IMG/VR virus record: IMGVR_UViG_3300023083_000001
Span: 62,001 to 126,000 of that record
Strand: one strand, 5' to 3'
DNA length: 64,000 bases
Of this stretch, positions 3,828 through 62,510 are shown piece after piece (the first letter of the stretch is position 1; the number at the start of each line of letters is the position of its first letter). The notes beneath the pieces were generated by a model. It made no database searches and had not been told where the DNA came from. It was given only the letters and a program-made list of their open reading frames with translations. The position numbers and the translations under genes were made by a program.

Positions 3828-5063
3828 TCAGACCAAACTACCGCGAAGACCCAAGCAACGGTTGATCTCTACGAGAGCAGGTTTGATCAACCTGTCGGTA
3901 GGTGTGTGGATCGATCCACCCAAGAACCCCAACATGGCTTCTTCCACACGCATGACTGCATCAGCCTCACGATACGCGGTGAACTGCGGCTCAGCCCAGG
4001 TTTTGGGATCGCCCTGTTCATCGCTGACCTTTTGTCGTTTAGCAAGCTCGATCTCAAACTGACGTCTCACGCCGTCGATGATGGTTTTGAACTTCGAGAG
4101 TTTGTTTGCGTCGTAACCAAGTACCTCAATCAACTCTCGCCGAGCAGCCAGCAGTTTGTCAAGGGGAACTTGTTGCAGATTACGCACCTCGTAATCTTTA
4201 GGCTTACCGTTAATGATCTCAACCTTCGGTCCACCGGGGTAGAAAGCTGCGTACAGGTTAGTACCCGTACTGAACTTAATCTCCGCTGAGTAATTAGTCA
4301 CCATGTTCTGAAGCTGGCTGTGTTTACCGGTGACTGATTGTCGGTCCAACGTCACGCACTTCTGACAAGCCTTTTCGATCTCGTCGATAAACTTCTTGGA
4401 GAAGTCAGCAACCTTCCCGGCGTTAGTGACCACCTCATCAAACGTGTGACCCAGGAAGCCGATACTCACACTGTGACCTTCAGCGTAACCCAACCGCAGA
4501 CTGGTCGACGTCTGAGGACGTGGAGGCTTTGGCGCTGCTGCGGTAGTGGCCGGTTCTTTCTCAGCAAAGTGGCTGAAATCGTTTTTAGCTTCACGCGCTT
4601 GACTTTCAGCAGCTTCCTGTTGTTTCATCAAGACCGATACCGTCATGGTCTTTCTGGTGAACAGACTTTTGATCTTCTCGATCAGTGCAGCAATCAACCG
4701 TTTGATCGTGTCGGCGATGTTACCGAGCAAACCACGTTTCTTCGCTTCAGCTTCGGCAGAATATTCCTCAGCAGAAACACTCTCCATGGAAGGCAATGCG
4801 ATTGCTGCGTATTCTTCAACGCCGAAACATTCGAACGCCAGCCGGATTTTACCGTGGTAGCTTTCGACCGAGATCCCTTCTGGACTGATGTCCGTCAGAA
4901 CGTTGCGCATACGCATGGCGATGTGCAGGTCGTTGAGATCTTTCTCGATGGACGATTCAAGACTCATCGTTTCGAGCAGATCGGATTCCAGGCTGATACT
5001 TTCCAGTACGGGTAATGCCGATGGGGTGTTTCTCGCACTGAGTGATTTCAAGAGGCTAGACAT
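3828..5063 (-). CDS. phiKZ-like internal head protein (gp93/gp162-type paralog)
   Basis: Acidic N-terminal propeptide with several S-X-E motifs (ISLES, MSLES, ISVES, SMES), then a KKRG..IK.LI..LIEKIK helix. Confidence 0.7.
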   Translation of the reverse strand: MSSLLKSLSARNTPSALPVLESISLESDLLETMSLESSIEKDLNDLHIAMRMRNVLTDISPEGISVESYHGKIRLAFECFGVEEYAAIALPSMESVSAEEYSAEAEAKKRGLLGNIADTIKRLIAALIEKIKSLFTRKTMTVSVLMKQQEAAESQAREAKNDFSHFAEKEPATTAAAPKPPRPQTSTSLRLGYAEGHSVSIGFLGHTFDEVVTNAGKVADFSKKFIDEIEKACQKCVTLDRQSVTGKHSQLQNMVTNYSAEIKFSTGTNLYAAFYPGGPKVEIINGKPKDYEVRNLQQVPLDKLLAARRELIEVLGYDANKLSKFKTIIDGVRRQFEIELAKRQKVSDEQGDPKTWAEPQFTAYREADAVMRVEEAMLGFLGGSIHTPTDRLIKPALVEINRCLGLRGSLV

Positions 5064-5082: not shown

Positions 5083-6261
5083 TTACTGGACCGAGGTCTT
5101 CGCCATGTTAGCGAGTGCGCTCAGCTGATTGGACAACGTAACTACAGCCGTGTAGAGGTTGTTCTGGAAGCTTTGACCTTCTCGCGCTACGGCAAGCAGC
5201 TTGCCGAGGAACTTACGGTCCTTGGCGATCTCGGCAGGGTCAGCATCCACCTTAGCTTTGAGTTCCCGTTCAGCCTTCTCCAGCTTACCCAAAGCTTCCT
5301 GTCCATGTTGCGCCATCTTGAACAAGAATTCAGCGTCTTGCCTCACCAGGTCCAGCAGTGAGTTCAATTCATCCAGGACCACACCGCCTTCAACCACTGC
5401 CGCTGTGCCGATCGGTTTCATGTAGTCGTCGAAGATGCTGCGCCAGGCGACGGTGAAAGTTTCGACATCGGTCTCGCTCTCAGCACCTTCATTGATGGCT
5501 TTTTGTGCGAGGGCTCTGTAATCCAACCCTTGGATATCCACCAGGAACTTGCGGATCTTGTTGGTGTTCAGTTTACCCGAAGTCAACAAATGGGCTGGAG
5601 TAGTCGGACGTGGCTTGGCACCGTCCTTAACCGTGTCGCGTTCAATCACACCTTCTTTAGGAGGCGTCACTTTTTCAGGAGTAGTCGAGGCTGCTGGTTC
5701 GGCTGCTTTGGCAGGTGCAGCTTTAGGCTTAGCCGGTACAGCGGTGTAACCCAAGGCTTTGACTTCCTTGACGGTTTCTTTGGCAGCGTCTACTTTCTTC
5801 TTGATCGCTTCCGTCTTGACGCCGGCATTGTCTTTGCTGCGAGTCAGCCAGGCCTTGAGCTTGACGATCATTTCACGGATCCACTTGAGGACCGCAGCGA
5901 CCACATCCTTAGCCTTCTGACCAAAGCTCTTCTTGTCAGCTTCAGCCGCTTCCAGAGAAACGGTGAACGCTGCCACTGGCGCTTTAACACCCGTGCTGCT
6001 CATCAGGACGCCAACAGCGAAATGGTAGTCAGCAACCGATTCGGTAGACAACTCCACATTGCTGTAACGTTCAGTGATCGCTTCGAATGAATCACAGAAA
6101 GCCAATGCGCGAGTTACTTCGCCAAAACGGGCTTCAGTCGCATATTGGAAATCTTCATCCGACATGACCAGCGCCGAAGTGTCAACCGAGTCACTGGTTT
6201 CAGGGAGTTGAACTTCACCGCTTTCAATAGCGAGATCCATCAGCAGGTTCTTCAGGTCCAT
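5083..6261 (-). CDS. phiKZ-like internal head protein (paralog)
   Basis: LAIES, LSTES and VSLEA motifs, the same post-propeptide helix, and an Ala/Lys/Pro linker. Confidence 0.7.
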   Translation of the reverse strand: MDLKNLLMDLAIESGEVQLPETSDSVDTSALVMSDEDFQYATEARFGEVTRALAFCDSFEAITERYSNVELSTESVADYHFAVGVLMSSTGVKAPVAAFTVSLEAAEADKKSFGQKAKDVVAAVLKWIREMIVKLKAWLTRSKDNAGVKTEAIKKKVDAAKETVKEVKALGYTAVPAKPKAAPAKAAEPAASTTPEKVTPPKEGVIERDTVKDGAKPRPTTPAHLLTSGKLNTNKIRKFLVDIQGLDYRALAQKAINEGAESETDVETFTVAWRSIFDDYMKPIGTAAVVEGGVVLDELNSLLDLVRQDAEFLFKMAQHGQEALGKLEKAERELKAKVDADPAEIAKDRKFLGKLLAVAREGQSFQNNLYTAVVTLSNQLSALANMAKTSVQ

Positions 6262-6318: not shown

Positions 6319-9192
6319 TCAATGATTACTTCTAGCTCGGGTGAGATTCTTGCGGATGTCTATCAGGTCATCTCTGAATTGACGGATGGCCGCTTGATCA
6401 TCTTTGAATGTTTCGCTGGCGAGATAGTCAGTACCGCAGACCGTGTCATAGATACGTTCGTTCTGGGTTGCAAAATACGTCTCGCGAGTTGTAGTCTTGT
6501 AAAGGTCGTTAAGTTGTTCGATCAACGGCTTCATCAACACTGGTTTATCTTCAGCCAACACACGCAAGCGTGTAGAATGACAACCCAAGCGGATCAGTTC
6601 TTTATCCAACGTGGATGACTCGGTAGAGACTTCATTACGGACAATCTTGATCGTAGTGTTACGCAAGATCTGGTGGATATCCACGTGCTCCACTTTGACC
6701 AGGTTCTGATCGACATGACGTTGGGTCTTGTACTCACCGTTCATGTTGTTCTGCTTGTTCCAGTTCGGCATCCATCCATCATCGTTGTCCGCTTTGATCG
6801 TGTAGATCCAAACGGTCAAGTCCAGGATGTCTTTCTTACTGAAGTCAGGATCAGAGATTTCGATGGTCAGGGTTTTACGCTTCTCATCGTAGCTGTAACG
6901 ATCCAGGAGGAATTTCTTCTCAATAGCTGAGGAAATGCCCAACATGATCGCTTCCGTCTTGTCATCAGCCGTATAGAGCCACGTGTTGTCTTCAGTCCCA
7001 TCCCACTGGACCAACTCACCACTGCGCTCAAAGCCAGGCATCAGCTCGTTCTGTTTATAAGCAGAACCGTGGTAGAGGTAAGGCGGCAGTGCGTAGGTGG
7101 TGTTACCCTCCAGATCCTCCTTGATGGATTCCTGCTCGTACTGACCAATGAAGTCGCGGCGCACCAATCCGTTAGTTTCCAGACTGATCTCGTTCATGAC
7201 CAGATCGAGGATCTCGTTATCGCGACCGTGTGATTCCAGAGCCAGTGTGTCAGTGTCCACGTTGGTGATACCAAGGATACTGGCAACGCTTTCCTGAGAC
7301 CATTGCAAGATGTCGTTACTACGAGTGGAGATGTTAGGCTCATCACTGGTGTCGAGCAGCATGTCCCAGACAAACACTGGACCGTCTTGACCCAGACGCG
7401 CTGCCCGTGCAATTGTCTGCACACGGATCGCATCACGGAACGGTTGGTTGATCAGGATCATGTCACTGGCGGGTGTCAACGGTACCGCTGTCGACAGAGA
7501 CTGGAAAGTCGCCGCTAACGGATTGACATCAGGATCAACGTAGAACGATTTAACGATACTGGACAAGTCCTTGTTCGTTGCGCCGTAAACGCGAGCGGTG
7601 TTGTAACCTTCCTTCTCGATGATGTCAGCGGTACGTTCCAACACCTCCACAAACGAGGTGAAGATCAGCATCTTCTTGCGAGCACCGTCGATGTACTTGA
7701 CGAAGTCGATATGCTCAACCATCTCCAAGTGACACTTACTGCGCATGCCGCCAACAATGGTTCCGAGCGCCTCACCCATGATCTTGAGCTTGACGTACTT
7801 GACCACCGACCTTGCGCCTTTGAAATCGTTCTTCAAAGGGTTGGTCAATGTTGGCAAGATGGTCTTCAGCTCGTACGTATTGCAGAGCTGCGCCTCAGCT
7901 TTCATAAGCTTTGGATCATACCCGGAAGATATAGTTCTAAAAGCAGATCGGTAATTACCGTAAGCACGACGATCAGCGTCAGTACGCAAAGTTCTTTCGA
8001 AGACACTGAGACCTTCCTGATATTTGTCATCGAAGTACTTCTTGTTCTTCGTGTAGTACAGCACGCGTTCAGCAATAAAGTCTCTCATTACTTCGCCAAT
8101 CGCCTGGAGCGTGTACTTCTTGGCGTTAGGCATTTGTACTTTGACAACTTCAGCGGTCACCACGGTGTCGACCACATCCTGTTTAGGCACGTGGAACTTC
8201 AAGTGCCCGATGCGGTGACGCAAAATGTCGTTAGCACGACGTGCATCTTTACCGTAGATCTTACGGAAGCGTTCTTCACACTCATCGTCAAAATCAGGGA
8301 CGGCGCATTTAAGGAAAGGAACGCACTCGATCCCCAATGCCAGGATCGGTGTACCCGATGCCCAGAGGTTGTAGCCGATGTCCTTAATGCTGCACAGCTC
8401 GACAAACATCTGCGTACGGTCTGCCGCCAGACGGTTGAAGTTGTGAGACTCGTCCAACACGATAAACGTGTCTTTGTTCTTGAACTCACGAGGATTGGCT
8501 TTTACAAACGCCAGGATCTTCTCGAGAGATTCGTAGTGGCAGATGTAGTAATGATGGTTGGTCGTTGGAGCCGTCCCATCGGTACTCATCCAGTACGTTT
8601 TCTTTTGCAGCATGATGTTAGCGATTGTATCTTCCCAGACGCGTTCAATAGCGTTCTTAGGCGTAACGATAATCACATGCTTAGCGTGCAAGCACTCACC
8701 GAGTACCAGGTCTGCCACGGTCTTACCAGAGCCTGCACCGGCATCCAGCATGTAGCCACGCAGGTTATACGCAGGCAGCATCTTACCGTAGAGTCGTACG
8801 AACTCTTTCTGGAACGGCTTGAGGGGGAAGGGCACCAGTTTATCAACCACTGACAAATCGGTGATGGATTCCACATCGCGATCGATCTGACCCAACCAGG
8901 TCTTCGTCAGCAGTGCATCGATGATCTTAGCCAGTACACGTTTAGGTGTACGGGATTGACGATCCTTGTAGATCGTTTCGCAGATATAAAGGAAGTCCAA
9001 ACCGAAGAAGTGTTTCATCTTCAGTTCACTGGCACGTACCGTGCTGAACATGTATTTGGAGATGGTGTTGTTACCCCAGATCCGATACATGTCTTTGAAC
9101 AACGCAAACGTACTGATCCCTTCCACCACAATGTGCTTGGGCGTGACTTCAACGTCCACGATTCCCAAACGATACTTTAGACCTGATAACAT
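6319..9192 (-). CDS. SNF2-like SF2 helicase with C-terminal extra domains
   Basis: Walker A DAGAGSGKT, DESH box, motif III SGTP, motif VI QTIARAARLG; about 300 aa of extension after LALES. Confidence 0.85.
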   Translation of the reverse strand: MLSGLKYRLGIVDVEVTPKHIVVEGISTFALFKDMYRIWGNNTISKYMFSTVRASELKMKHFFGLDFLYICETIYKDRQSRTPKRVLAKIIDALLTKTWLGQIDRDVESITDLSVVDKLVPFPLKPFQKEFVRLYGKMLPAYNLRGYMLDAGAGSGKTVADLVLGECLHAKHVIIVTPKNAIERVWEDTIANIMLQKKTYWMSTDGTAPTTNHHYYICHYESLEKILAFVKANPREFKNKDTFIVLDESHNFNRLAADRTQMFVELCSIKDIGYNLWASGTPILALGIECVPFLKCAVPDFDDECEERFRKIYGKDARRANDILRHRIGHLKFHVPKQDVVDTVVTAEVVKVQMPNAKKYTLQAIGEVMRDFIAERVLYYTKNKKYFDDKYQEGLSVFERTLRTDADRRAYGNYRSAFRTISSGYDPKLMKAEAQLCNTYELKTILPTLTNPLKNDFKGARSVVKYVKLKIMGEALGTIVGGMRSKCHLEMVEHIDFVKYIDGARKKMLIFTSFVEVLERTADIIEKEGYNTARVYGATNKDLSSIVKSFYVDPDVNPLAATFQSLSTAVPLTPASDMILINQPFRDAIRVQTIARAARLGQDGPVFVWDMLLDTSDEPNISTRSNDILQWSQESVASILGITNVDTDTLALESHGRDNEILDLVMNEISLETNGLVRRDFIGQYEQESIKEDLEGNTTYALPPYLYHGSAYKQNELMPGFERSGELVQWDGTEDNTWLYTADDKTEAIMLGISSAIEKKFLLDRYSYDEKRKTLTIEISDPDFSKKDILDLTVWIYTIKADNDDGWMPNWNKQNNMNGEYKTQRHVDQNLVKVEHVDIHQILRNTTIKIVRNEVSTESSTLDKELIRLGCHSTRLRVLAEDKPVLMKPLIEQLNDLYKTTTRETYFATQNERIYDTVCGTDYLASETFKDDQAAIRQFRDDLIDIRKNLTRARSNH

Positions 9193-9252: not shown

Positions 9253-9564
9253 TCACAGCCAATCTTCGGGGATATCGGGCAGATCTACAATCTGTCCTTT
9301 CAGGTCATGACTGCAATCATCCAGGAAGTTAATCTTGCCCGCTTGTACGAAGGCATGGCACACCCGACGTGGATTATTCCCCAGGACCACCAGGACGCTA
9401 GGAGACAGAGTGGGGGTGAGTACATCCCCATCCCACTGCCAAATAGCGCCGACGCTGTTGCGTTTGAGGATGGTCACTGGATGCAACATCATACAACCTG
9501 GACAAAAATATTCGAGGACGTTGTCATCGCAGAGGATCAGTTTAGGAGACAGGTACTTATCCAT
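9253..9564 (-). CDS. DUF6527-like Zn-binding protein
   Basis: FCPGC..H, W.WDG...PTLSPS, CH.F...G.I.FL.DC.H. Confidence 0.65.
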   Translation of the reverse strand: MDKYLSPKLILCDDNVLEYFCPGCMMLHPVTILKRNSVGAIWQWDGDVLTPTLSPSVLVVLGNNPRRVCHAFVQAGKINFLDDCSHDLKGQIVDLPDIPEDWL

Positions 9565-9899
9565 TAGACTACCTCGTTCCCGTTCGCTGGAAAGTCAGGC
9601 AGATCCACGGTTTGGTTTGCCAGTGGGTGCCAGCAGTCTGACAAGAACTGCAACTTACCATCCGTCAGAAAGAGATGGCAGATCTTGCTAGTACCGTCCT
9701 CTACAGTAGGTGGTAGTGTGGTCTTGATGCTAGGTGTGAAGGTAGGCTTGTCGTAGTCCTTATTAAAGCCCCACGCACACTGTGAGGGGTTATCGGGATG
9801 TTCTACTGTGACGCTGTGTTTGACTTCACAACCTGGACACCAGAACTGAATGATGTACCCGTGGAAGCTCTGCAACTTGGGAGACAGTGTAGCGTACAT
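9564..9899 (-). CDS. DUF6527-like Zn-binding protein (tandem paralog)
   Basis: WCPGC..H, PTFTPS, CH.FLTDG.LQFLSDCWH; 1-bp overlap with its paralog. Confidence 0.65.
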   Translation of the reverse strand: MYATLSPKLQSFHGYIIQFWCPGCEVKHSVTVEHPDNPSQCAWGFNKDYDKPTFTPSIKTTLPPTVEDGTSKICHLFLTDGKLQFLSDCWHPLANQTVDLPDFPANGNEVV

Positions 9900-9929
9900 G
9901 TCTGATATGTCCTTAAAGAGAGGTGTGTG

Positions 9930-10757
9930 ATGTTAGCTGTTCTAATCAAAGGTAATCCTAAATTCATAAACACCGATCAAGCTCGTAATTATTATCAGGA
10001 GATTATCAACTTCCTCCAAAACTTAGGTTTTAAAGTTGAAGTGAACGCTGGCTCTGATTACACACGCCCACGTCAAGATGCTGCTCTTTACATTGGCCAC
10101 TCTCGAGGCGCTGGCCGATATGAGTTCATGGACGAAAAGAACCAGCTTAAGTTTTTGAGGTTCGGTGATCCTGACGGAATTATCGATCCGGTTGATCGTA
10201 AGTGGCAAGCCGAGAATCCACCACCTACTAATCAACACCCACCTAAGGAACACTTCATCTTCTCGAAACAACAACAAGACGCAATATTGGATAAGGTTCG
10301 TCAGCTTGGATTGGATGTCTCCACTGAATCTGTTCTACCTAATCTAAAGGAGGATGCTGATCGCTTGGTCGCACTGGCGATGAAGGATGAGTTCCTGGGA
10401 CCCAAAGCATTGGAACGCCACATGGATAATCTTACCATGATCCAATTCAAGGGTAAGAACGTGGGGTTCATGGTGCCGTTCAAAGAAGCCGATGGACGTT
10501 ACCGGGCAGGTAGCATCTACATCGAACCTGAGTACCGTAATAAAGGTTTGGCGACTACCCACATCAGCGAATGGTTTCGCAACCGTCGGGGTCGTGCGTG
10601 GATCGAACCCAAGAATGCTGCGAGTCAGAAGATCTTCAAACAGGCAGGTTTCTACAAGACTGGGCGAACGCAAAAGGGTAAGTCTGGCCGCACTTTTGAT
10701 GAGTGGGTAAACAATGGAATGCCCGCGACTAACGGCGCTGCGGTGTGGGGTTGGTAA
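9930..10757 (+). CDS. alpha/beta-hydrolase-like domain fused to GNAT acetyltransferase
   Basis: GHSRG nucleophile-elbow motif in the N-half; GNAT motifs IYIEPEYRNKGLA and N.ASQKIFKQAGF in the C-half; ATG at 9930 follows GAGAGG. Confidence 0.7.
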   Translation: MLAVLIKGNPKFINTDQARNYYQEIINFLQNLGFKVEVNAGSDYTRPRQDAALYIGHSRGAGRYEFMDEKNQLKFLRFGDPDGIIDPVDRKWQAENPPPTNQHPPKEHFIFSKQQQDAILDKVRQLGLDVSTESVLPNLKEDADRLVALAMKDEFLGPKALERHMDNLTMIQFKGKNVGFMVPFKEADGRYRAGSIYIEPEYRNKGLATTHISEWFRNRRGRAWIEPKNAASQKIFKQAGFYKTGRTQKGKSGRTFDEWVNNGMPATNGAAVWGW

Positions 10758-37816: not shown

Positions 37817-40078
37817 ATGAAACTCAATGACCTCAAACGTAAAAGCGGCTTCCAGAACGTTGGTGGTGATCGCAAGATCAATGCCCACGCCGTTAAAGAC
37901 GCACTGCTCAGCAACTCCCAGTTGTACAGCGTTGAAAGCGCCCAGCTGATCGGCGACTTGAAAGAAGGCAAATTCGACCTCGACCTGACCCAGGCTGTTG
38001 AAGCTCTGCGTCCATCGCTCGAATCCAGCAATGCCGAAGGCGCTCCTGTAAACAGCACCGGCCTGATGGTCGCTGGTTTCCTGGCATCGTTTGGTCAAGA
38101 TCCAAAGTCGTACCTGAGCCTGGCCGTCAGCACTGAATCCAAAGCTCCTGCCGGCACTGTCTTTGCTCACGCCGATGGCGCCGAGTTCGACTCCGCCTAT
38201 TCGACCGAATCCTTCGACAACCAGTCGCTGGTCGATCACCTGGCAATTTCCGTTGGCCTGAACTACAAGATCAGCCGCCAATCGCCGGCCATGGAAATGA
38301 TCTATCGCACCGTGCCTCTGACCCCAGAGCAAGGCGGCGTCGACATTACCGTTCCTTCGTTGTACGTGCAGAACACTCTGCGCCACGACCTGAGCGGCGA
38401 TGCTTCTGACTTCGGCCTGCGCCGTGTGATGGACTCCACCATCGACCACACCGTTCTGAACGACAACAGCACCGCGCTGATCCCTGTCTACACCGATGCT
38501 GGTAAAGACAAGTTCGTGGCCGAATCCGTCGTCGAACCGTTCGAATCCGTCGTTGGTCGCCGTACCGTGACCACCAGCGCCCTGGCGCTGAACAAGACCA
38601 TCAACCTGTTCGGCCTGGGTCAAGCTGACACCATCCAACGCGTTGGTCAGTCTGACTACACCGAAGCAATGGACCGTAACATCGGCGTGGACTCCGTCTA
38701 CTTCGCAGTTGGCGGCAAAACCATTCGCTGGGACACTCGTGGCCTGCCATTCAGCCGCTTCGTGAAAGGTCCAGAGCAAGGCGGGCGTCAGCTGATGCTG
38801 AACTTCCCTCTGACCACTCTGATCCTGGGTCCAGGCAGCACTGACTACGAAGGCACTGTCCTGACCGGCGGCGTATTCGACATCATCACCACTGGCAAGT
38901 ACAAAGTGCGCCTGCGCACCGTGCTGACCGGTAACGCTGACGTTGAACGCGGCACTGTAACCGTGAGCGCAAGCCAGGTTGAAGTGTTGAACGTGCAGAA
39001 CGAAGCTGGCGACATGGTTCCTCTGACCACCGGCGCTGGCAAGTCCATCGTTGATGGCCTGGCTAACCTGGGCGTTGTGGGCTGGTACCCAGATGCACGC
39101 GTTACCAACAGCAACCACCGTCACCTCGGCCTGATGCTGAACGTGCGTACCGTCACCGAGCGCTTGCAGACTCGTCTGCGTTCGCCATTCTTCGTTCCGT
39201 ACCCAGTGAACGAAGAGCGTGACCAGACCATCATGGACTACCTGACCTTCGCGGTCGGCGCGTACATGAACAACGAAGCTGTCAGCACTCTGATCAACTA
39301 TCACGAGCGTCTGATGCGCCTCACCGGTGGTCTGCGTGGTGCAATGACCGCGGGCGACTTCGAGCTGAACGCTCTGCCTATCGAAGGCGTTGGTCGTTAC
39401 CTGATCAACCCGTACGTAGCGGAAGTGAACATCAACCTGCTGAACGGCCAATCCCTGGAAACCTCTGGTAACCTGGAAAACGCCAACGCAGTGCTGATCA
39501 ACGCCGTTCGTTCGATCGCGTTCGAAATCCTGCAAAACACCAACTATGAGAACGCTTGCCGTTACATGGACGGTGGCGATACCGCTCAGCCTTGGAAAAT
39601 CGCTCTGGTCACCTCCCCAGCGATCAAGCAGTTCTTCAGCGTTTCGGGCGACACTCGTACCCTGGGTGCAAACCTGCCGTTCCAACTGGAATCGGATCCA
39701 GACAGCCGTCTGCGTAACACGATGTACATGACCTTCATCCGTGAAGGCGATGGCATCGACCCGCTGAACGCTGGCGTGAACTTGATGACCCCGACCCTCG
39801 TGTCGAGCATCACCACGACTCGTAACAACCGTGTTGCAACTGAATGCGTGGTTCAACCTCGCTTCCAGCACTACAACCTGTTGCCGATCATCGTGAAGTT
39901 CAACGTGAGCGGGGTGTTCGAACTGTTGGAATCTGTGATGCCCTTTCGTGTCCAGAACCAACCGGTTGACGCTTTCGAAGGTAGCCCCTCTACAGGTACT
40001 ACCCCGACTGGCGGTAACGAGACCCCAGTAACTGCTCCTGCTGGCGGTACTGACAGCGGCGCTGGCGCCGGTGCGTAA
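37817..40078 (+). CDS. major capsid protein (phiKZ gp120-like)
   Basis: 753 aa; propeptide with VSTES/YSTES; GLNY..SRQ...E..Y, FSRF..G, DP.N.G motifs; strong codon bias; ATG at 37817 after GGAG. Confidence 0.9.
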   Translation: MKLNDLKRKSGFQNVGGDRKINAHAVKDALLSNSQLYSVESAQLIGDLKEGKFDLDLTQAVEALRPSLESSNAEGAPVNSTGLMVAGFLASFGQDPKSYLSLAVSTESKAPAGTVFAHADGAEFDSAYSTESFDNQSLVDHLAISVGLNYKISRQSPAMEMIYRTVPLTPEQGGVDITVPSLYVQNTLRHDLSGDASDFGLRRVMDSTIDHTVLNDNSTALIPVYTDAGKDKFVAESVVEPFESVVGRRTVTTSALALNKTINLFGLGQADTIQRVGQSDYTEAMDRNIGVDSVYFAVGGKTIRWDTRGLPFSRFVKGPEQGGRQLMLNFPLTTLILGPGSTDYEGTVLTGGVFDIITTGKYKVRLRTVLTGNADVERGTVTVSASQVEVLNVQNEAGDMVPLTTGAGKSIVDGLANLGVVGWYPDARVTNSNHRHLGLMLNVRTVTERLQTRLRSPFFVPYPVNEERDQTIMDYLTFAVGAYMNNEAVSTLINYHERLMRLTGGLRGAMTAGDFELNALPIEGVGRYLINPYVAEVNINLLNGQSLETSGNLENANAVLINAVRSIAFEILQNTNYENACRYMDGGDTAQPWKIALVTSPAIKQFFSVSGDTRTLGANLPFQLESDPDSRLRNTMYMTFIREGDGIDPLNAGVNLMTPTLVSSITTTRNNRVATECVVQPRFQHYNLLPIIVKFNVSGVFELLESVMPFRVQNQPVDAFEGSPSTGTTPTGGNETPVTAPAGGTDSGAGAGA

Positions 40079-52839: not shown

Positions 52840-55587
52840 ATGGATAACACCAACGAGCGCGGCGCCAGTAAGGTGCGGCAGTTCAGAGATATCAGTGAAG
52901 AAGATCAACGGTTACTCGACCGTCTGGTAGTCGACCGACAAGCACCGAAGTCATCGAAGAAACACGTTGACATTACCGTACTCAACAACGTCTTTAAACG
53001 GACGCTGCGCAACGCCTCAGATATCCGCAACATCTTTACGGTGATGCCGGATCTGAACCTGCCTCGTGAAATGTTGGTGAGTGCCATCTGCGCCCCAGGT
53101 GACTTAGCCACCACGACGTTGATTATGTCTAACGGCCTGGGTGGTGGTTCCAACCCTTTGACCGCTGCCATTATCGATGCGCTGGAACAGTTCCACATTA
53201 AGGAACAGGGACTGCCAGCAAAGATTCCTGGTTGGATCGATGACGCCAAGATCATGACTGGCGCACACCCTATCATGATCATCCCCGAAGCATCGATTGA
53301 CAAGATGATCCACGGTGGTGTCGAGGGTGCGTCGCTTGAGTCCATCTCCAATTACGGTGGGGAATACCAAAACGACTGGTTCGTTCCTAAAGGCCTGTTG
53401 GGACTTCAAGTACCCACCGCTGAGAAGCAGGATTACATCAGTCTGGAATCGGCATTTAGCCGGGTTAACCACGCTAAGATGGCTGAATATCATACCATCA
53501 AGGCAGCGCCGCAAGGTGCGAAGAAAACTGAAATCAAGTTACCTATCATGGTGACTGACAACATGGCCTCTTTACGTAAACCTGCTGTACAGCAGATCAA
53601 ACGTGCAGGTGCCATGGAACGAGCCTACGGTACGCCGTCGCTTGAGTCACGCCGTCGTGAGCGCTTGAGTAAACAGAAAGACGAAAACAAGGTCACTAAC
53701 GCCGAGATCTACTCACGTTTCTTCAAACCCCCTCAGGGTGCCAAGAAGAGTCGTCTGGAAGTAGTCCCTACGCTCAAGCAAGCGGGCGGTAAGACCTTTG
53801 GTCATCCATTGGTATATCACCTCCCTATTGAGTCGGTGATGCCTGTCTGCGTTCCTGGCGATGAAACCAACCACGTCGGCTACATTGTGATCCTGGACCA
53901 GAACGGTTACCCAGTATCATACTCCCGTAGATTGGATTATTACGAGGACTTGCGTCGTGGCGGTATGGGTGATGCAAGTGCGGTAGCGGGTGAGTTGATC
54001 CAGATGTCGAAGGAAACCCTGCAAGGGGGTATCGGCATGGCGAACGACATGCAACTGGACCGTCTGGCTCAACTGCATGGCGACATCATCGATGCTGACC
54101 TGATTGCTCGACTGAAGTCTGGTTTGATGAGCGGTGACTTTGAACTCAGCCGCAGTGAGCACGTCAACCGTCTGTTGTTCTCTCGGACCATGAAGAACCA
54201 AATGACTACCCTGCTGTACGTTCCAGCAGAGCTGTTGGTCTACTTTGCGTTCGACTACAACGAGTTTGGTATCGGTAAGTCGATCCTGGAAGACGCCAAG
54301 GCGCTTGCAGCTATGCGAGCGGCATTGAACATCGCTAACGTGGTGGGTAGTGCCAAAGCTGCTATTCCTGGTAAGAACATCAACATCAAGCTTGATCCAG
54401 ATGATGGCGATCCTGTCGGTACTGCAACGTTCCTGGCTAATGAAGCAATGGCCTTGAACTATCAGGAATTCCCAATGTCGGTGTCTACACCGCAGGGGAT
54501 GGCTGAGAAAATGCAGATGACTGGCTTCTCGATGAACGTGACGGGTAACCCTCGTTACCCTGAAGTCGAAACCAGTGTGACTGAGCGTGAAAGTACGTTC
54601 CGTCCTGTGGCTCAAGAGTTGTTGAGTCAACTGCGCGATGACATGACTCGGGTGTTCAGCCTGACGCCTGAGATGATCGATGGAGCTAACCAACCCGACT
54701 TCGCCACTACCGTGGTGCAGAACAGTTTAATGCTCCTCAAACGCGTCATGGTCGACCAGGGGATCGCTAACCCGCAGATCGCAGACTACGTTCGAATCTT
54801 TACGATGAACTCAGGTATCTTGATCGATAACCTGATGGACATCATCGAAGGTAACAAGAAACATCTGCCTAAAGAATACGCTGAGGATCCAGAAGGTTAT
54901 CTTGAAGAGTTCCTGAATGCCTTGCAGGTTAATCTGCCAGCGCCAGAAAACGAATCGATGACCAAACAGATTGCTCAGATCAAGGAGTACTCTGATTTCC
55001 TTGATACGATCATTCCTCAGGCTTATCTGCGTGATGAGTTCCTGGATGGTTACTCGACTGAAATGCAACGTGAAGCGATGCCTACCCTGATTGCCATGTG
55101 GAAAGGCGTAGAGTTGCGTCGTTACATGCGTGATCGCGGCATGTTCCGTCAGTTGGATATCTTCGGTAACAATGAAGATGGTTCTCCAATCATGGACATG
55201 ATGAAAGAAGCTCAAGGGTTTGTCGAGTCGATGCGTAACGCATTCGGCGATTATTCCAAACTGGCTTCCAAAGATGCGTTGGAAAGGAAATCTGAAAATG
55301 AAAGGTTGCGTGTACTTGATGAGAAAGCGAAAGCTTCTCTCACCTCACCTCCTCCTGAAGAAACTCCTGAAGGTGGCGCACCCACTGGCGAGTCTAATGA
55401 GTTAGGTGACGACACTAACGATTTAGGTGATGGTGGTGAAATCCCAGCAGCGCCTGAAGAGGGTGGGGAAGCTGTCGCTGAAACACCTGCTGAAGATACT
55501 CCTGCTGTGGAACCGGAAACCGATTCTGATGCGTCGTCTACTACAGACAACGTTGAAGACGATCTGGATATCCCTCCAGCACCGTAA
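52840..55587 (+). CDS. portal protein (phiKZ gp129-like)
   Basis: 915 aa; LP.ES..P...PG....H.GY and Y.AF.Y...G.G.S motifs; SLES sites; acidic C-terminal tail; synteny. Confidence 0.75.
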   Translation: MDNTNERGASKVRQFRDISEEDQRLLDRLVVDRQAPKSSKKHVDITVLNNVFKRTLRNASDIRNIFTVMPDLNLPREMLVSAICAPGDLATTTLIMSNGLGGGSNPLTAAIIDALEQFHIKEQGLPAKIPGWIDDAKIMTGAHPIMIIPEASIDKMIHGGVEGASLESISNYGGEYQNDWFVPKGLLGLQVPTAEKQDYISLESAFSRVNHAKMAEYHTIKAAPQGAKKTEIKLPIMVTDNMASLRKPAVQQIKRAGAMERAYGTPSLESRRRERLSKQKDENKVTNAEIYSRFFKPPQGAKKSRLEVVPTLKQAGGKTFGHPLVYHLPIESVMPVCVPGDETNHVGYIVILDQNGYPVSYSRRLDYYEDLRRGGMGDASAVAGELIQMSKETLQGGIGMANDMQLDRLAQLHGDIIDADLIARLKSGLMSGDFELSRSEHVNRLLFSRTMKNQMTTLLYVPAELLVYFAFDYNEFGIGKSILEDAKALAAMRAALNIANVVGSAKAAIPGKNINIKLDPDDGDPVGTATFLANEAMALNYQEFPMSVSTPQGMAEKMQMTGFSMNVTGNPRYPEVETSVTERESTFRPVAQELLSQLRDDMTRVFSLTPEMIDGANQPDFATTVVQNSLMLLKRVMVDQGIANPQIADYVRIFTMNSGILIDNLMDIIEGNKKHLPKEYAEDPEGYLEEFLNALQVNLPAPENESMTKQIAQIKEYSDFLDTIIPQAYLRDEFLDGYSTEMQREAMPTLIAMWKGVELRRYMRDRGMFRQLDIFGNNEDGSPIMDMMKEAQGFVESMRNAFGDYSKLASKDALERKSENERLRVLDEKAKASLTSPPPEETPEGGAPTGESNELGDDTNDLGDGGEIPAAPEEGGEAVAETPAEDTPAVEPETDSDASSTTDNVEDDLDIPPAP

Positions 55588-59564: not shown

Positions 59565-62510
59565 TTATTTCCAGTTGAGTTTACCAGACGTGTTTGGAGT
59601 ACCCGAAGTCAGCGGGATGCCCGAGCCTTGTGAGTTACGTGCCAATACCGCGTCACCGATAGCTACTCGTTTCTCAGCAACAATCTGCTGGATACCTTCG
59701 GTAGTCGTGGTAACGTAGCCGATATACAACGAACTATCGGCAGTTGGAGCAACAGTACTACTCGCCACAACCTGATACGAAATCACATCACCACGTCGAA
59801 CTAGCCAAATGTAGAAGGTTTTGTTCGCATCAGTCCCAGGTGTCAGATTGTAGGTCAGTGTGTCCACTTGGACATATAGACCGTTCATCATTGCAGGAGT
59901 GACGTCCGAGAAATAAATCGTCCAGGCACTCACGATTTTCTGTGAGACAATGACGATCGATTTTGCCGGATCAGCCAGTGCGGCGTAGAGGTCGGTGTTA
60001 GGATCCCCGGTGATCGGTTGGGTCGTGCAGGCTAACGTCCCGATCAACTTGGTCCCGGCATCGATCTGGTAACGCAGGAACTCAGAACACAAGACCAGGT
60101 ACATGCCACGGTTCGGGAAGTTCAACCAACCTGCCGGCGCAGCGACGTAGTAGTTCCAGAGAGGACTTCCCACGAAGTTGAATTTACCGGTCGATGCCAC
60201 GTATGTCGCAGCTGCAATCACAGCTTCAGCATCACCAAAGATACTGTAAACCAGACTCGGTGATAACCCCAACGCAAACCCACCCGCCACTCGACGAATG
60301 GCGCTTTGACCCACTTGGATCGTACCGATAATGGCAAGACCATTATTCCCAGCGGTAGGTATGGCAACAGCGCCGAACGATCCAGAAACGATCGAAGCGG
60401 CCGTCACGTTTTGTCGAGATCCACTGATGTTGAGCGCGTAGAGGGCCAACCATGCTGACCGGTCGTTGCGGATGAAAGATACAGTCGCAAATGCAGGCAT
60501 GTCACTATACAGCTGCGGCACGCTTACTTCGATTTCAAGATTGGACAGCGAGGCGTAAAGTGCATAACCCTTACTAGCCAGGTCGTTAACAATCTGCGTG
60601 CGCAAGGTATTGATCAGCGCCGCAGGGAAAGTCACAGTACCAGTCGGGGTGATGTTCGCATCGATTTTCTGACTGCGAGTAGTCGGTAAGGCCGATGCGA
60701 ACCGCGCGAGGCTAGACCAACCGCCCGATGCCGGATCACCTTCGTTCAATCCCGCGTAGATTAAATCGTTGTTCTGCCCCAGGTCCATGAAGAATTTGCG
60801 GTCTACCGTTGGGTTGAAACCTTTGAACCCGAATGCCCCACTGATGGAGTCATATTGGTAAGTCCCGTTACCTTCCAATGCCGCCCGTACTGCGAACCCA
60901 CTGAACTCACCCAGACGGGTGTTATCGTTCTTCACCGTAACGACGTTATCGCCGATGTTACCTGCGCAGGAGAACGACTGAGACAACGCACTACCGAATC
61001 GACCAGCGAAACCATTACGCAACACCTCGGCAGGACGCACATCACCATTCATGACTGAACGATAATTGGTGTTGGCTGGATACTTGTACCGTGTCAGGAA
61101 TCGTTGGGTGTAATAAGTGGTTGTGTCAAACGTCCACATCTGGTTGAACTTGGTGCTGTATAGCGCGATGTTAGCTTGCCCACCAATCGATCCGTACCAA
61201 TTCTTGTAGTAGCCACTGTTCCCGAGGTTCTGACCATCAGTGTCTAAATGCAAGGCCTGGCCACGAGACCAGTAGAAATCAACACTGTCGTACCGCACCG
61301 CCACTTTAGAGTTGTGGTAGATCGCGACGTCGATTACTTTGGAATCGGTGATCTCAAAGTTGAAGGCTGCGTAAAAACCAATTTGCTGAGACGCCTTGTC
61401 TGTCGGGTCGAGCGTTAACCAGGGCAAAAACGTGACGTATACGTTACCAGCGTCGTTGACGTGTACTGTCAGCGCTCCGGTACCGTTTGACAGACCTTGG
61501 ACAACTTCAAACGCATTACCGCTGCGGTTAAGCATATCCCGGACGTTGTCGAACAGTTGAATGTCGTCACGAGCTACGACGCCGGCAGAGCCGCGGTTGA
61601 TCGACCAGCCAACAACCCGCTCGGGGGCCACATACACACCCGAGATAAAGTTAGCCAATGGAACACGATAAACACGAAACGCCAATGCAGGTGCTGCAAC
61701 AGTGAGCGTATTGATCAGGATGTAGACGTACCCATTCTTGATGTAAGCCGTGGGAACGTTAGCCGTGGCGGTGCCTTCAATGAAGGTGTTGAAAATGCCG
61801 TTCTCTGGGATGATGATCCCAGTGTGTTTGGTCTGATCGAAGGTGTTGTTCGTCAGCGACATGAAGTAGCCGTTGAACTTACCGTCCGACTTGTTTACCA
61901 ACCGCCCAATGATAATTTGCTGGGTGGCGTTGAGAATGCAGAAACCTTGTCGATCCGAGGGGAAAAACGCAGGTTGGTACTTGGTGTTCGTGGTTACAAT
62001 GTGGCTGGTAAAGTCTAGTTGGTTACCCGCATCGCGCATGTAAGAATAGTACAAACCTGCACTGTCGCCGTCGGTACCCGAACGCAACATCACCAACGTA
62101 CCGTTGTCTTCCAACATCACCGCAACGTTACCGTAAGGAGACGCCGAGCTACCTGATTCAAACGAACCAGTGATGCCAGGCGGCAGATACTCACGGTCAC
62201 CGTAGAACGAAAACGGCACGCCGCTGTTGTTATCCAGCAGTTGATCCAGTCTGCTGTCGAACTCAGGACCTGTATAGGTCCCGATAGAAGCCAGGCTCGC
62301 TTGGTGGATGTTCTGCGCTAACTTCGACGTGTGTTTAGTGACTTCGCCACGCAGGATAGCGATGACTTGAGCTGGAGTTTGACCTTCTAGCTTATCGGAC
62401 ACGTCGGCATGTTCGGCATTACCACCTGTCTTCGACAAGGCCTTTTCAAACTCGACCTTGAAGTCAGTCATTTTCTGCTTAATGTTAGCAATGGTACTTG
62501 ATACCGACAT
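59565..62510 (-). CDS. large tail/baseplate fibre protein (phiKZ gp131-like)
   Basis: 981 aa; P...YG.R.YLPP...GSFE, E..G..V.LR.GTDG motifs; GSGIP..G.P..W terminus. Confidence 0.7.
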   Translation of the reverse strand: MSVSSTIANIKQKMTDFKVEFEKALSKTGGNAEHADVSDKLEGQTPAQVIAILRGEVTKHTSKLAQNIHQASLASIGTYTGPEFDSRLDQLLDNNSGVPFSFYGDREYLPPGITGSFESGSSASPYGNVAVMLEDNGTLVMLRSGTDGDSAGLYYSYMRDAGNQLDFTSHIVTTNTKYQPAFFPSDRQGFCILNATQQIIIGRLVNKSDGKFNGYFMSLTNNTFDQTKHTGIIIPENGIFNTFIEGTATANVPTAYIKNGYVYILINTLTVAAPALAFRVYRVPLANFISGVYVAPERVVGWSINRGSAGVVARDDIQLFDNVRDMLNRSGNAFEVVQGLSNGTGALTVHVNDAGNVYVTFLPWLTLDPTDKASQQIGFYAAFNFEITDSKVIDVAIYHNSKVAVRYDSVDFYWSRGQALHLDTDGQNLGNSGYYKNWYGSIGGQANIALYSTKFNQMWTFDTTTYYTQRFLTRYKYPANTNYRSVMNGDVRPAEVLRNGFAGRFGSALSQSFSCAGNIGDNVVTVKNDNTRLGEFSGFAVRAALEGNGTYQYDSISGAFGFKGFNPTVDRKFFMDLGQNNDLIYAGLNEGDPASGGWSSLARFASALPTTRSQKIDANITPTGTVTFPAALINTLRTQIVNDLASKGYALYASLSNLEIEVSVPQLYSDMPAFATVSFIRNDRSAWLALYALNISGSRQNVTAASIVSGSFGAVAIPTAGNNGLAIIGTIQVGQSAIRRVAGGFALGLSPSLVYSIFGDAEAVIAAATYVASTGKFNFVGSPLWNYYVAAPAGWLNFPNRGMYLVLCSEFLRYQIDAGTKLIGTLACTTQPITGDPNTDLYAALADPAKSIVIVSQKIVSAWTIYFSDVTPAMMNGLYVQVDTLTYNLTPGTDANKTFYIWLVRRGDVISYQVVASSTVAPTADSSLYIGYVTTTTEGIQQIVAEKRVAIGDAVLARNSQGSGIPLTSGTPNTSGKLNWK

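Follow-up and report, generated by a model that had tools for sequence, protein, structure and literature searches.

What becomes of a phage protein in which two domains are joined by the same pentapeptide that stands in the propeptide of the major capsid protein? The question is raised by a 275-residue open reading frame (ORF; P0001) within a 64,000-nucleotide stretch of DNA, hereafter the window, which covers positions 62,001 to 126,000 of the IMG/VR record IMGVR_UViG_3300023083_000001; positions below are those of the window unless 'genome' is specified. A sequence-only reading of the window had noticed a GHSRG motif in the N-terminal half of this protein, GNAT acetyltransferase motifs in its C-terminal half and VSTES at the junction. 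It proposed that the protein is packaged in the head and cut into a mini esterase/deacylase and an acetyltransferase, a possible eraser and writer pair delivered with the DNA. All of these placements proved exact, and the identical VSTES was confirmed in the capsid protein propeptide (38126–38140) and in a SNF2 helicase (6616–6630). The interpretation stands in part: the two-domain fusion, the GNAT and the flexible, site-bearing linker are retained, whereas an obligate writer/eraser pair is not. In the best-supported explanation, to which we assign a probability of about one half, the VSTES linker would be recognised by the prohead protease and the protein would hence probably be head-loaded. 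From comparative evidence, the protein is probably a miniature 'polyvalent' effector, that is, a small two-in-one cargo protein.

The ORF matches its own phage genome at 100%; the record of that genome spans 258,357 bp and has direct terminal repeats. The sequence was found in leaf-litter metagenomes, and its source is a phiKZ-like (chimallivirus-related) jumbo phage that is uncultured. No isolate has a major capsid protein more than 35% identical to its own, and by this protein the closest isolates are phiKZ-like jumbo phages that infect Pseudomonas, Xanthomonas and Burkholderia.

VSTES occurs three times in the proteins of the genome, compared with 0.09 times in residue shuffles and a maximum of two in 200 shuffles. 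Taken alone, this repetition was rejected as an argument: it is weak by itself because 109 pentapeptides occur in at least three proteins of the same genome. The shorter motifs were then counted genome-wide. STES is found nine times for 1.3 expected (z = 6.8) and S-x-E-S 48 times for 19.5 expected (z = 6.8), an approximately 2.4-fold enrichment. S-x-D-S, with 11 copies among the proteins that have an orthologue in the complete relative G007, lies below the composition expectation as estimated from residue frequencies. Motif conservation was compared over 194 orthologue pairs between the target genome and G007. S-x-E-S is kept as S-x-E at 31 of the 44 orthologous positions (70%), compared with 16–36% for control tripeptides. 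The conserved sites are located in the capsid protein propeptide (three sites), in a 915-residue virion structural protein (three sites), in the protease and in internal head protein paralogues. The capsid VSTES stands at residue 104, and the region homologous to the mature capsid starts downstream, at about residue 95–131. Moreover, of the three proteins with VSTES, two have known head proteins of phiKZ as homologues, namely the capsid protein and the SNF2 ORF, the latter being homologous to gp203, which is annotated as 'structural protein'.

The prohead protease of the phage (264 residues; genome positions 165762–166556) matches phiKZ gp175 (E = 3e-22) and phrog_3014 (E = 7e-56); a search of the phage genome with Pfam Peptidase_S77 gave no match, but none in the controls either, and is uninformative. 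Its S-L-E-S at residues 202–205, with the predicted cut after Glu, aligns with the region of the A-L-E site of gp175, and it is at this A-L-E-type C-terminal region that the phiKZ and SPN3US proteases cut themselves. Cleavage occurs after Glu in S/A/G-X-E in phiKZ, in S/A/G/T-X-E in 201phi2-1 and in A-X-E in SPN3US, the last favouring Val at P4 and Ser at P1′. Relative to a predicted cut after E133, the VSTES of the fusion places Val at P4, Ser at P3, Glu at P1 and Ser at P1′. Because the motif is enriched, conserved and placed in the capsid, protease and head proteins, S-x-E(-S) is the putative maturation site of this phage's clade.

The linker of the fusion has the properties that such a site would need. 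It is the only low-confidence stretch between the two domains of the model, with a predicted local distance difference test score (pLDDT) of about 54, falling below 50 at residues 134–137, and it presents a predicted [S/A/G]-x-E site in an accessible, conserved segment. A hydrophobic-S-x-E is present in the linker of 13 of the 19 close homologues, while linker length and sequence otherwise vary. The fusion members without it mostly carry [SG]-x-E immediately before the C-terminal tail, and the single tail-less member has neither the linker site nor the pre-tail one. Among the longer Trp-tailed relatives, S-x-E follows the N-terminal domain (hereafter the N-domain) within ten residues in 18 of 26, irrespective of what comes next (a GNAT, two GNATs, Acb1 or an unknown domain), and the second junctions of three-domain relatives carry S-x-E again. 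One such relative, the metagenomic P0055 (432 residues), is a three-module protein composed of an HNH endonuclease, the N-domain, I-S-T-E-S, an Acb1 phosphodiesterase, V-S-V-E-T and a Trp-ended tail, with protease-type sites at both later junctions. As for the SNF2 helicase, its VSTES sits exactly at the end of the 846-residue G007 orthologue and beyond it the protein continues with an extra module of roughly 100 residues (6319–6630), for which no homologue was found in G007 or elsewhere in the target genome and no match in Pfam. This module looks like a second fusion joined via a VSTES linker.

The C-terminal half is a GNAT acetyltransferase by fold, profile and motif, as the sequence-only reading had it. 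Pfam Acetyltransf_1 (PF00583) matches residues 170–241 with 25.5 bits for a cut-off of 20.7 (26.8 bits with the C-terminal half alone), and this half also matches the PHROG acetyltransferase family phrog_1249. The model has a pLDDT of about 90 over residues 141–260, and all 121 of its Foldseek matches in the PDB at E ≤ 0.001 are GNATs. The segment R203-N-K-G-L-A208 fits R/Q-x-x-G-x-G/A, the acetyl-CoA pyrophosphate-binding signature (motif A) of GNATs, and R203 is invariant in the 19 homologues. The assignment is secure at the level of a generic GNAT: in a subfamily search RimI was the best model but fell far below threshold, and YncA and AAC(6′) were likewise sub-threshold.

The N-domain belongs to PHROG 30942, a family of 'unknown function' (E = 1e-33), and its profile retrieved 380 clusters (50% identity) from a library of 1.8 billion proteins. 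Modelled from an alignment of 30 homologues (pLDDT 95.3), it is a four-stranded, doubly wound α/β sandwich. Strand 1 begins at residue 2, which means that the protein has no N-terminal propeptide. Near-invariant over 183 sequences are G8, N9, P10, Y22, G41, T45, P47, H57, S58, R59, G60, R63, D89, P104 and H108. Conservation in the family reaches 97–98% for H57, S58 and G60 (97% for S58), 96% for R63 and 91% for R59. GHSRG lies between strand 53–57 and helix 58–66, a position like that of a nucleophile elbow (model pLDDT 95), and S58, D89 (91%) and H108 (98%) stand in the Ser-Asp-His order of α/β-hydrolases. In the model, the invariant GNP, H-S-R-G-x-x-R, Asp and His appear to lie on the substrate-binding edge of the sheet.

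Fold searches did not point to a particular family. None of the Pfam and NCBIfam models, the LPD families of polyvalent proteins in Pfam included, matched the N-domain, and a profile search of the PDB found nothing. Foldseek returned only generic PDB matches (E ≥ 0.009), including a cutinase at E = 0.03 with a template modelling (TM) score of 0.51. In the VIA search, Z did not exceed 8.5, and hydrolases (7.8–8.0) were tied with LacI, CheY and GT-B folds. The ESM Atlas, searched by shape and by features, likewise gave generic matches at best, at a TM score of at most 0.61 (NAD kinase, deoxyribosyltransferase and flavodoxin). The canonical α/β-hydrolase sheet of about eight strands is absent from these 125 residues, which hold four strands and one bridge. 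We therefore rejected the N-domain as a recognisable α/β hydrolase, its matches being tied and generically Rossmann-like. The near-invariant residues, the elbow-like HSRG turn and the Ser-Asp-His order nevertheless make it very probable that the N-domain is an enzyme or binds a ligand. An anionic substrate is suggested by the conserved arginines, and the domain is probably a hydrolase or a binder of a small anionic substrate. Of the 'mini esterase' proposed from the sequence alone, the G-x-S-x-G elbow and the conserved Ser, Asp and His survive, but a specific α/β-hydrolase match does not back them, and the term describes a possible activity.

About 20 metagenomic homologues, on contigs of up to 243 kb, share the N-domain–GNAT architecture, which is lineage-specific. 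The cultured Pseudomonas chimalliviruses encode the N-domain as a standalone protein of 146–156 residues (201phi2-1 gp429, Psa21 gp236 and PhiPA3 gp373); in G007 and in Burkholderia phage FLC9 the N-domain and the GNAT are separate, distant genes; and phiKZ has no N-domain gene. Many phages have a standalone N-domain and no GNAT partner gene nearby. The N-domain is also found inside proteins of up to 2,123 residues, and its partners include SNF2, fused RNA polymerase β/β′, HNH with Acb1 (directed against the cyclic oligonucleotide-based antiphage signalling system, CBASS), HicA, SET, InPase, LigD_N, ferritin-like and KTSC domains. Two giant single-chain RNA polymerase β/β′-like proteins contain it, P0158 (2123 residues) between the Rpb2-like and Rpb1-like parts and P0184 (1818 residues) after both.

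The C-terminus of these proteins is also distinctive. The last residue is Trp in 18 of the 19 fusion homologues, in many standalone N-domain proteins and in the standalone GNAT of G007; in a tally of 180 sequences (members of the N-domain family plus three isolate-phage translations) it is Trp in 33, compared with a Trp frequency of 1.3%. The consensus of the tail has Pro at −6, Leu or Phe at −3 and Trp at −1 (P-x-x-hydrophobic-x-W), and short standalone N-domain forms often end with S-x-E, five to ten residues and then Trp. The protease of the target phage ends in M-P-T-T-L-K-W. In G007, the protease ends in V-P-K-S-F-G-W and the N-domain protein in S-P-R-S-F-S-W; in G014, the endings are K-P-N-F-I-K-W for the protease and K-P-A-F-L-S-W for the fusion. 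The K-P-A-F-L-E-W of the FLC9 protease may be compared with the fusion tails R-P-A-F-L-S-W and K-P-A-F-L-S-W. The corresponding tails of the Pseudomonas clade are basic, and protease and N-domain protein alike finish in the style R-R-P-x-hydrophobic-x-R. From these patterns, it is possible that the Trp tail is a capsid-loading tag shared with the protease.

A broader proposal, which we regard as tentative and rather doubtful, is that phiKZ-like jumbo phages load capsid cargo by means of a C-terminal tag copied from the tail of their own protease, with an S-x-E release site upstream. The tag may take the form P-x-x-hydrophobic-x-W in one clade and R-R-P-x-hydrophobic-x-R in the Pseudomonas clade. 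It may load enzyme modules alone or strung together by cleavable S-x-E linkers, with the capsid protease acting as a polyprotein processor; the modules may be the N-domain, the GNAT, Acb1 and the extra module on the SNF2 helicase. Terminal Trp as a general head signal was rejected: only seven of the 317 predicted proteins of the target genome end in Trp, and among these are the homologues of phiKZ gp69 and gp70, both without a 'structural' note in the phiKZ record. The two homologues (genome 215495–217078 and 217117–218343) have Arg/Gly/Ser-rich tails ending in R-S-W, a different kind from the protease-like tail, and the terminal Trp is kept in their G007 orthologues; phiKZ gp69 is presumably the nuclear-shell import factor PicA/Imp1. 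Just upstream of the window, a 163-residue ORF (genome 58158–58649) without a PHROG or Pfam match ends in P-S-T-E-S-K-V-F-Q-W. This two-part ending resembles that of the short N-domain proteins, and the ORF may encode another tagged cargo protein.

If the fusion is indeed a cargo protein, its course could be as follows. It would be recruited into the prohead, possibly via its C-terminal tail, which resembles the C-terminus of the protease. The prohead protease would then cut after E133, freeing the N-domain from the GNAT-plus-tail piece. Both enzymes would accompany the DNA into the next host and there act independently of each other; the GNAT, as RimI-like and Rac-like GNATs suggest by analogy, would most likely acetylate a protein of that host. 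A precedent for internal cutting exists in phiKZ gp162, a head protein of which several fragments are retained in the capsid.

We may wonder whether the two halves, once freed, would form a dedicated acetyl 'writer' and deacylase/esterase 'eraser', co-packaged and separated by the protease. The repeated fusion of the N-domain with a GNAT would suit such a pair, as would the strand–turn–helix position of G-H-S-R-G, the near-invariant Ser58, Asp89 and His108 and the presence of cutinases and small α/β hydrolases among the tied weak fold matches. However, no sequence or fold match singles out hydrolases, and Arg59, Arg63, Asn9 and Thr45 hint at an anionic substrate that does not fit acetyl-lysine. 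The standalone occurrence of the N-domain without a nearby GNAT, the separate genes of G007 and FLC9 and the many unrelated effector domains to which it is fused (from SNF2, RNA polymerase and Acb1 to HicA, SET, InPase, LigD_N and ferritin) all loosen the partnership, and in one subclade the protease-type site follows the GNAT instead of separating the two domains. This polyvalent-type company argues against a dedicated pair and for independent effectors that share a delivery route; the pair put forward by the sequence-only reading is thus unlikely, and we give it little credence. An equally improbable role for the N-domain is that of an accessory to head maturation which works with the prohead protease, for example by clearing propeptide fragments, the GNAT being a passenger. 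A standalone N-domain gene does lie immediately downstream of the protease gene in G004 (L027/L049) and G005 (L028/L050) and within about 1.5 kb of it in Psa21 (L025/L056), G008 (L024/L055) and G010 (L026/L053); the style of the C-terminal tail is shared with the protease in two clades, and the N-domain has its Ser/His/Asp constellation. Yet the two genes are far apart in the target genome, 201phi2-1 and PhiPA3, phiKZ matures its head in the same way without an N-domain gene, and the domain is common in polyvalent proteins of the counter-defence type, in elements unlikely to share the capsid protease.

A more serious rival, which we consider possible although unlikely, is an ordinary cytoplasmic, non-virion enzyme of two domains that has inherited the linker motif without any processing role and acts uncut, for example by acetylating a host or phage target. 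Several observations would fit this and weigh against head loading. S-x-E is a short motif. Virion proteins are labelled in the records of 201phi2-1 and Psa21, but the homologues gp429 and gp236 are entered there as 'hypothetical protein', which is annotation only, and no homologue of the fusion is reported in a virion proteome. Every cleavage mapped in SPN3US except the protease's own removes an N-terminal propeptide, which the fusion lacks, and the genes around it are non-structural ones (that of the SNF2 helicase, those of the small Cys-rich proteins, and small ORFs without known function). Only metagenomes have yielded the phage, and its sequence was found in none of the RNA runs searched. 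The tail evidence has its own weak points: the fusion's tail, A-A-V-W-G-W, is without Pro at −6; FLC9 is discordant, with a Trp-ended protease and N-domain and GNAT genes devoid of Trp tails; the covariation of protease and N-domain protein tails appears to rest on few independent lineages; and the gp69 and gp70 homologues end in Trp without being marked structural. A complex prediction for the capsid protein with the GNAT-plus-tail piece scored 0.00, which is no answer and evidence neither way. What speaks against a non-virion enzyme is that the junction keeps its S-x-E within an otherwise variable linker, that the motif reappears at other junctions of differently built relatives, that it is otherwise a conserved mark of the clade's head proteins, and that the neighbouring SNF2 protein is homologous to a phiKZ virion protein. 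Cleavage by the prohead protease and head loading hence remain the explanation that we prefer.

Should it be correct, the consequences would extend beyond this locus. Nucleus-forming and related jumbo phages depend on proteins that are injected with the DNA, most of them unidentified, and a protease-site linker combined with a protease-like tail would provide a sequence rule for predicting injected effectors, and with them the injected proteome, as well as a handle for packaging foreign proteins. It would explain the free fusing and splitting of effector domains between relatives, and would widen the concept of polyvalent proteins to include one that the capsid protease processes in trans. The analysis also flags phrog_30942 as a large uncharacterised phage domain with an invariant Ser/His/Asp/Arg site, found beside counter-defence modules such as Acb1.

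Table 1. Coordinates, in window numbering, of the fusion gene, its parts and three other genes with S-x-E-S sites.
Feature	Position	Strand	Basis or remark
ORF P0001, 275 residues: N-domain, linker, GNAT and C-terminal Trp tail	9930–10757	+	ORF call
N-domain, residues 1–125, phrog_30942, four-stranded Rossmann/flavodoxin-like fold	9930–10304	+	PHROG, model
G8-N9-P10 loop after strand 1	9951–9959	+	In 95–97% of 183 family members
GHSRG, residues 56–60	10095–10109	+	Between strand 53–57 and helix 58–66
D89, candidate acid residue	10194–10196	+	Conserved in 91% of family
H108, candidate general base	10251–10253	+	Conserved in 98% of family
Inter-domain linker, residues 126–136	10305–10337	+	Low model confidence; variable among homologues
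VSTES, residues 130–134, predicted prohead-protease site	10317–10331	+	E133 codon 10326–10328
GNAT acetyltransferase domain, residues 137–262	10338–10715	+	Pfam, Foldseek
R203-N-K-G-L-A208, acetyl-CoA (motif A) signature	10536–10553	+	R203 invariant in alignment
Disordered C-terminal tail, last residues V-W-G-W	10716–10754	+	Model, alignment
SNF2 helicase ORF, 957 residues, phiKZ gp203 homologue	6319–9192	-	VSTES 6616–6630, residues 855–859
Major capsid protein ORF	37817–40078	+	S-x-E-S sites 37925–37939, VSTES 38126–38140, YSTES 38198–38212
Virion structural protein, 915 residues, phrog_3004	52840–55587	+	Three conserved S-x-E-S sites, residues 165–267

The start of the fusion ORF is the ATG at 9930, with an alternative GTG start at 9927 and a Shine–Dalgarno-like AGAGAGG run upstream. 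In a search for late promoters, a TATG-type motif was found upstream of a few head genes, in too few instances, and the region upstream of the fusion misfits the tightest pattern; scans for sigma-70 promoters and terminators were at background level. Between the SNF2 gene and the oppositely oriented fusion gene lie two tandem, paralogous Cys-rich proteins with paired C-x-x-C (9253–9564 and 9564–9899, minus strand; 103 and 111 residues; phrog_3362, unknown function). Downstream of the SNF2 gene, two further minus-strand ORFs without a PHROG or Pfam match carry the motif. The one at 3828–5063 (411 residues) has four S-x-E-S in its first 95 residues, aligned to S-x-E of its best G007 match, as in an internal head protein, and the one at 5083–6261 (392 residues) has L-S-T-E-S at residues 71–75. 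Pfam scans of other small STES-bearing ORFs found nothing. Finally, a paralogous, perhaps tail-fibre-like gene cluster occupies 58115–67535 on the minus strand (genome 120115–129535). It encodes two proteins of about 960–980 residues (phrog_3573), with G-S-F-E-S-G at about residue 115, and four of about 235–245 residues, and the C-termini share a G-S-x-I-P ... W-x-x pattern.

How does the fusion compare with known systems? A packaged and injected protein-modifying enzyme trimmed by the prohead protease has its counterpart in T4 Alt, an ADP-ribosyltransferase that is trimmed at both ends after Glu and loses 63 C-terminal residues. The modification differs, the GNAT being an acetylating enzyme, and so would the address: T4 internal proteins are targeted by a short N-terminal sequence, whereas the signal of the fusion would be C-terminal or internal. 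With phiKMV Rac and RimI-like phage GNATs the fusion shares a small GNAT, of which RimI is the best, albeit weak, family match; it has no specific sequence relationship to them and is fused to a second domain. For the GNATs of jumbo phages, host RNA polymerase or ribosomal proteins have been suggested as targets of acetylation. The HK97 protease tail and the cargo-loading peptides of encapsulins are short C-terminal peptides common to protease and cargo, with a cleavage site before them; the resemblance of the fusion's tail to these is one of sequence pattern only.

The closest parallels are two. The processed head and ejection proteins of phiKZ, 201phi2-1 and SPN3US come from genomes with the same type of protease (gp175/gp245, S80) and share the [S/A/G]-x-E cut motif, and the Val at P4 and Ser at P1′ of the fusion are those of the SPN3US logo. 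Almost all of these substrates lose an N-terminal propeptide, whereas in the fusion the N-terminus is built into the fold and the cut is predicted to fall between two enzyme domains. The polyvalent proteins of phages and conjugative elements, according to the prediction of Iyer et al. (2017; PMC5512222), are delivered together with the DNA and broken up into separate units. Like them, the fusion combines at least two unrelated effector-type domains in one polypeptide, and GNATs, including RimI-like ones, are among their listed modules (PMC5512222); the N-domain itself is found in large proteins with SNF2, HicA, InPase and KTSC domains typical of the class. The fusion differs in having two domains only, one of which, the N-domain, matches no Pfam family, in lacking by Pfam an embedded zincin-like peptidase (MPTase), and in its non-structural gene neighbours; its processing would take place in trans, by the capsid maturation protease acting at linker motifs. 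The fusion would thus be a small variant of both the processed phiKZ-like ejection proteins and the polyvalent proteins, one processed in trans by the capsid protease.

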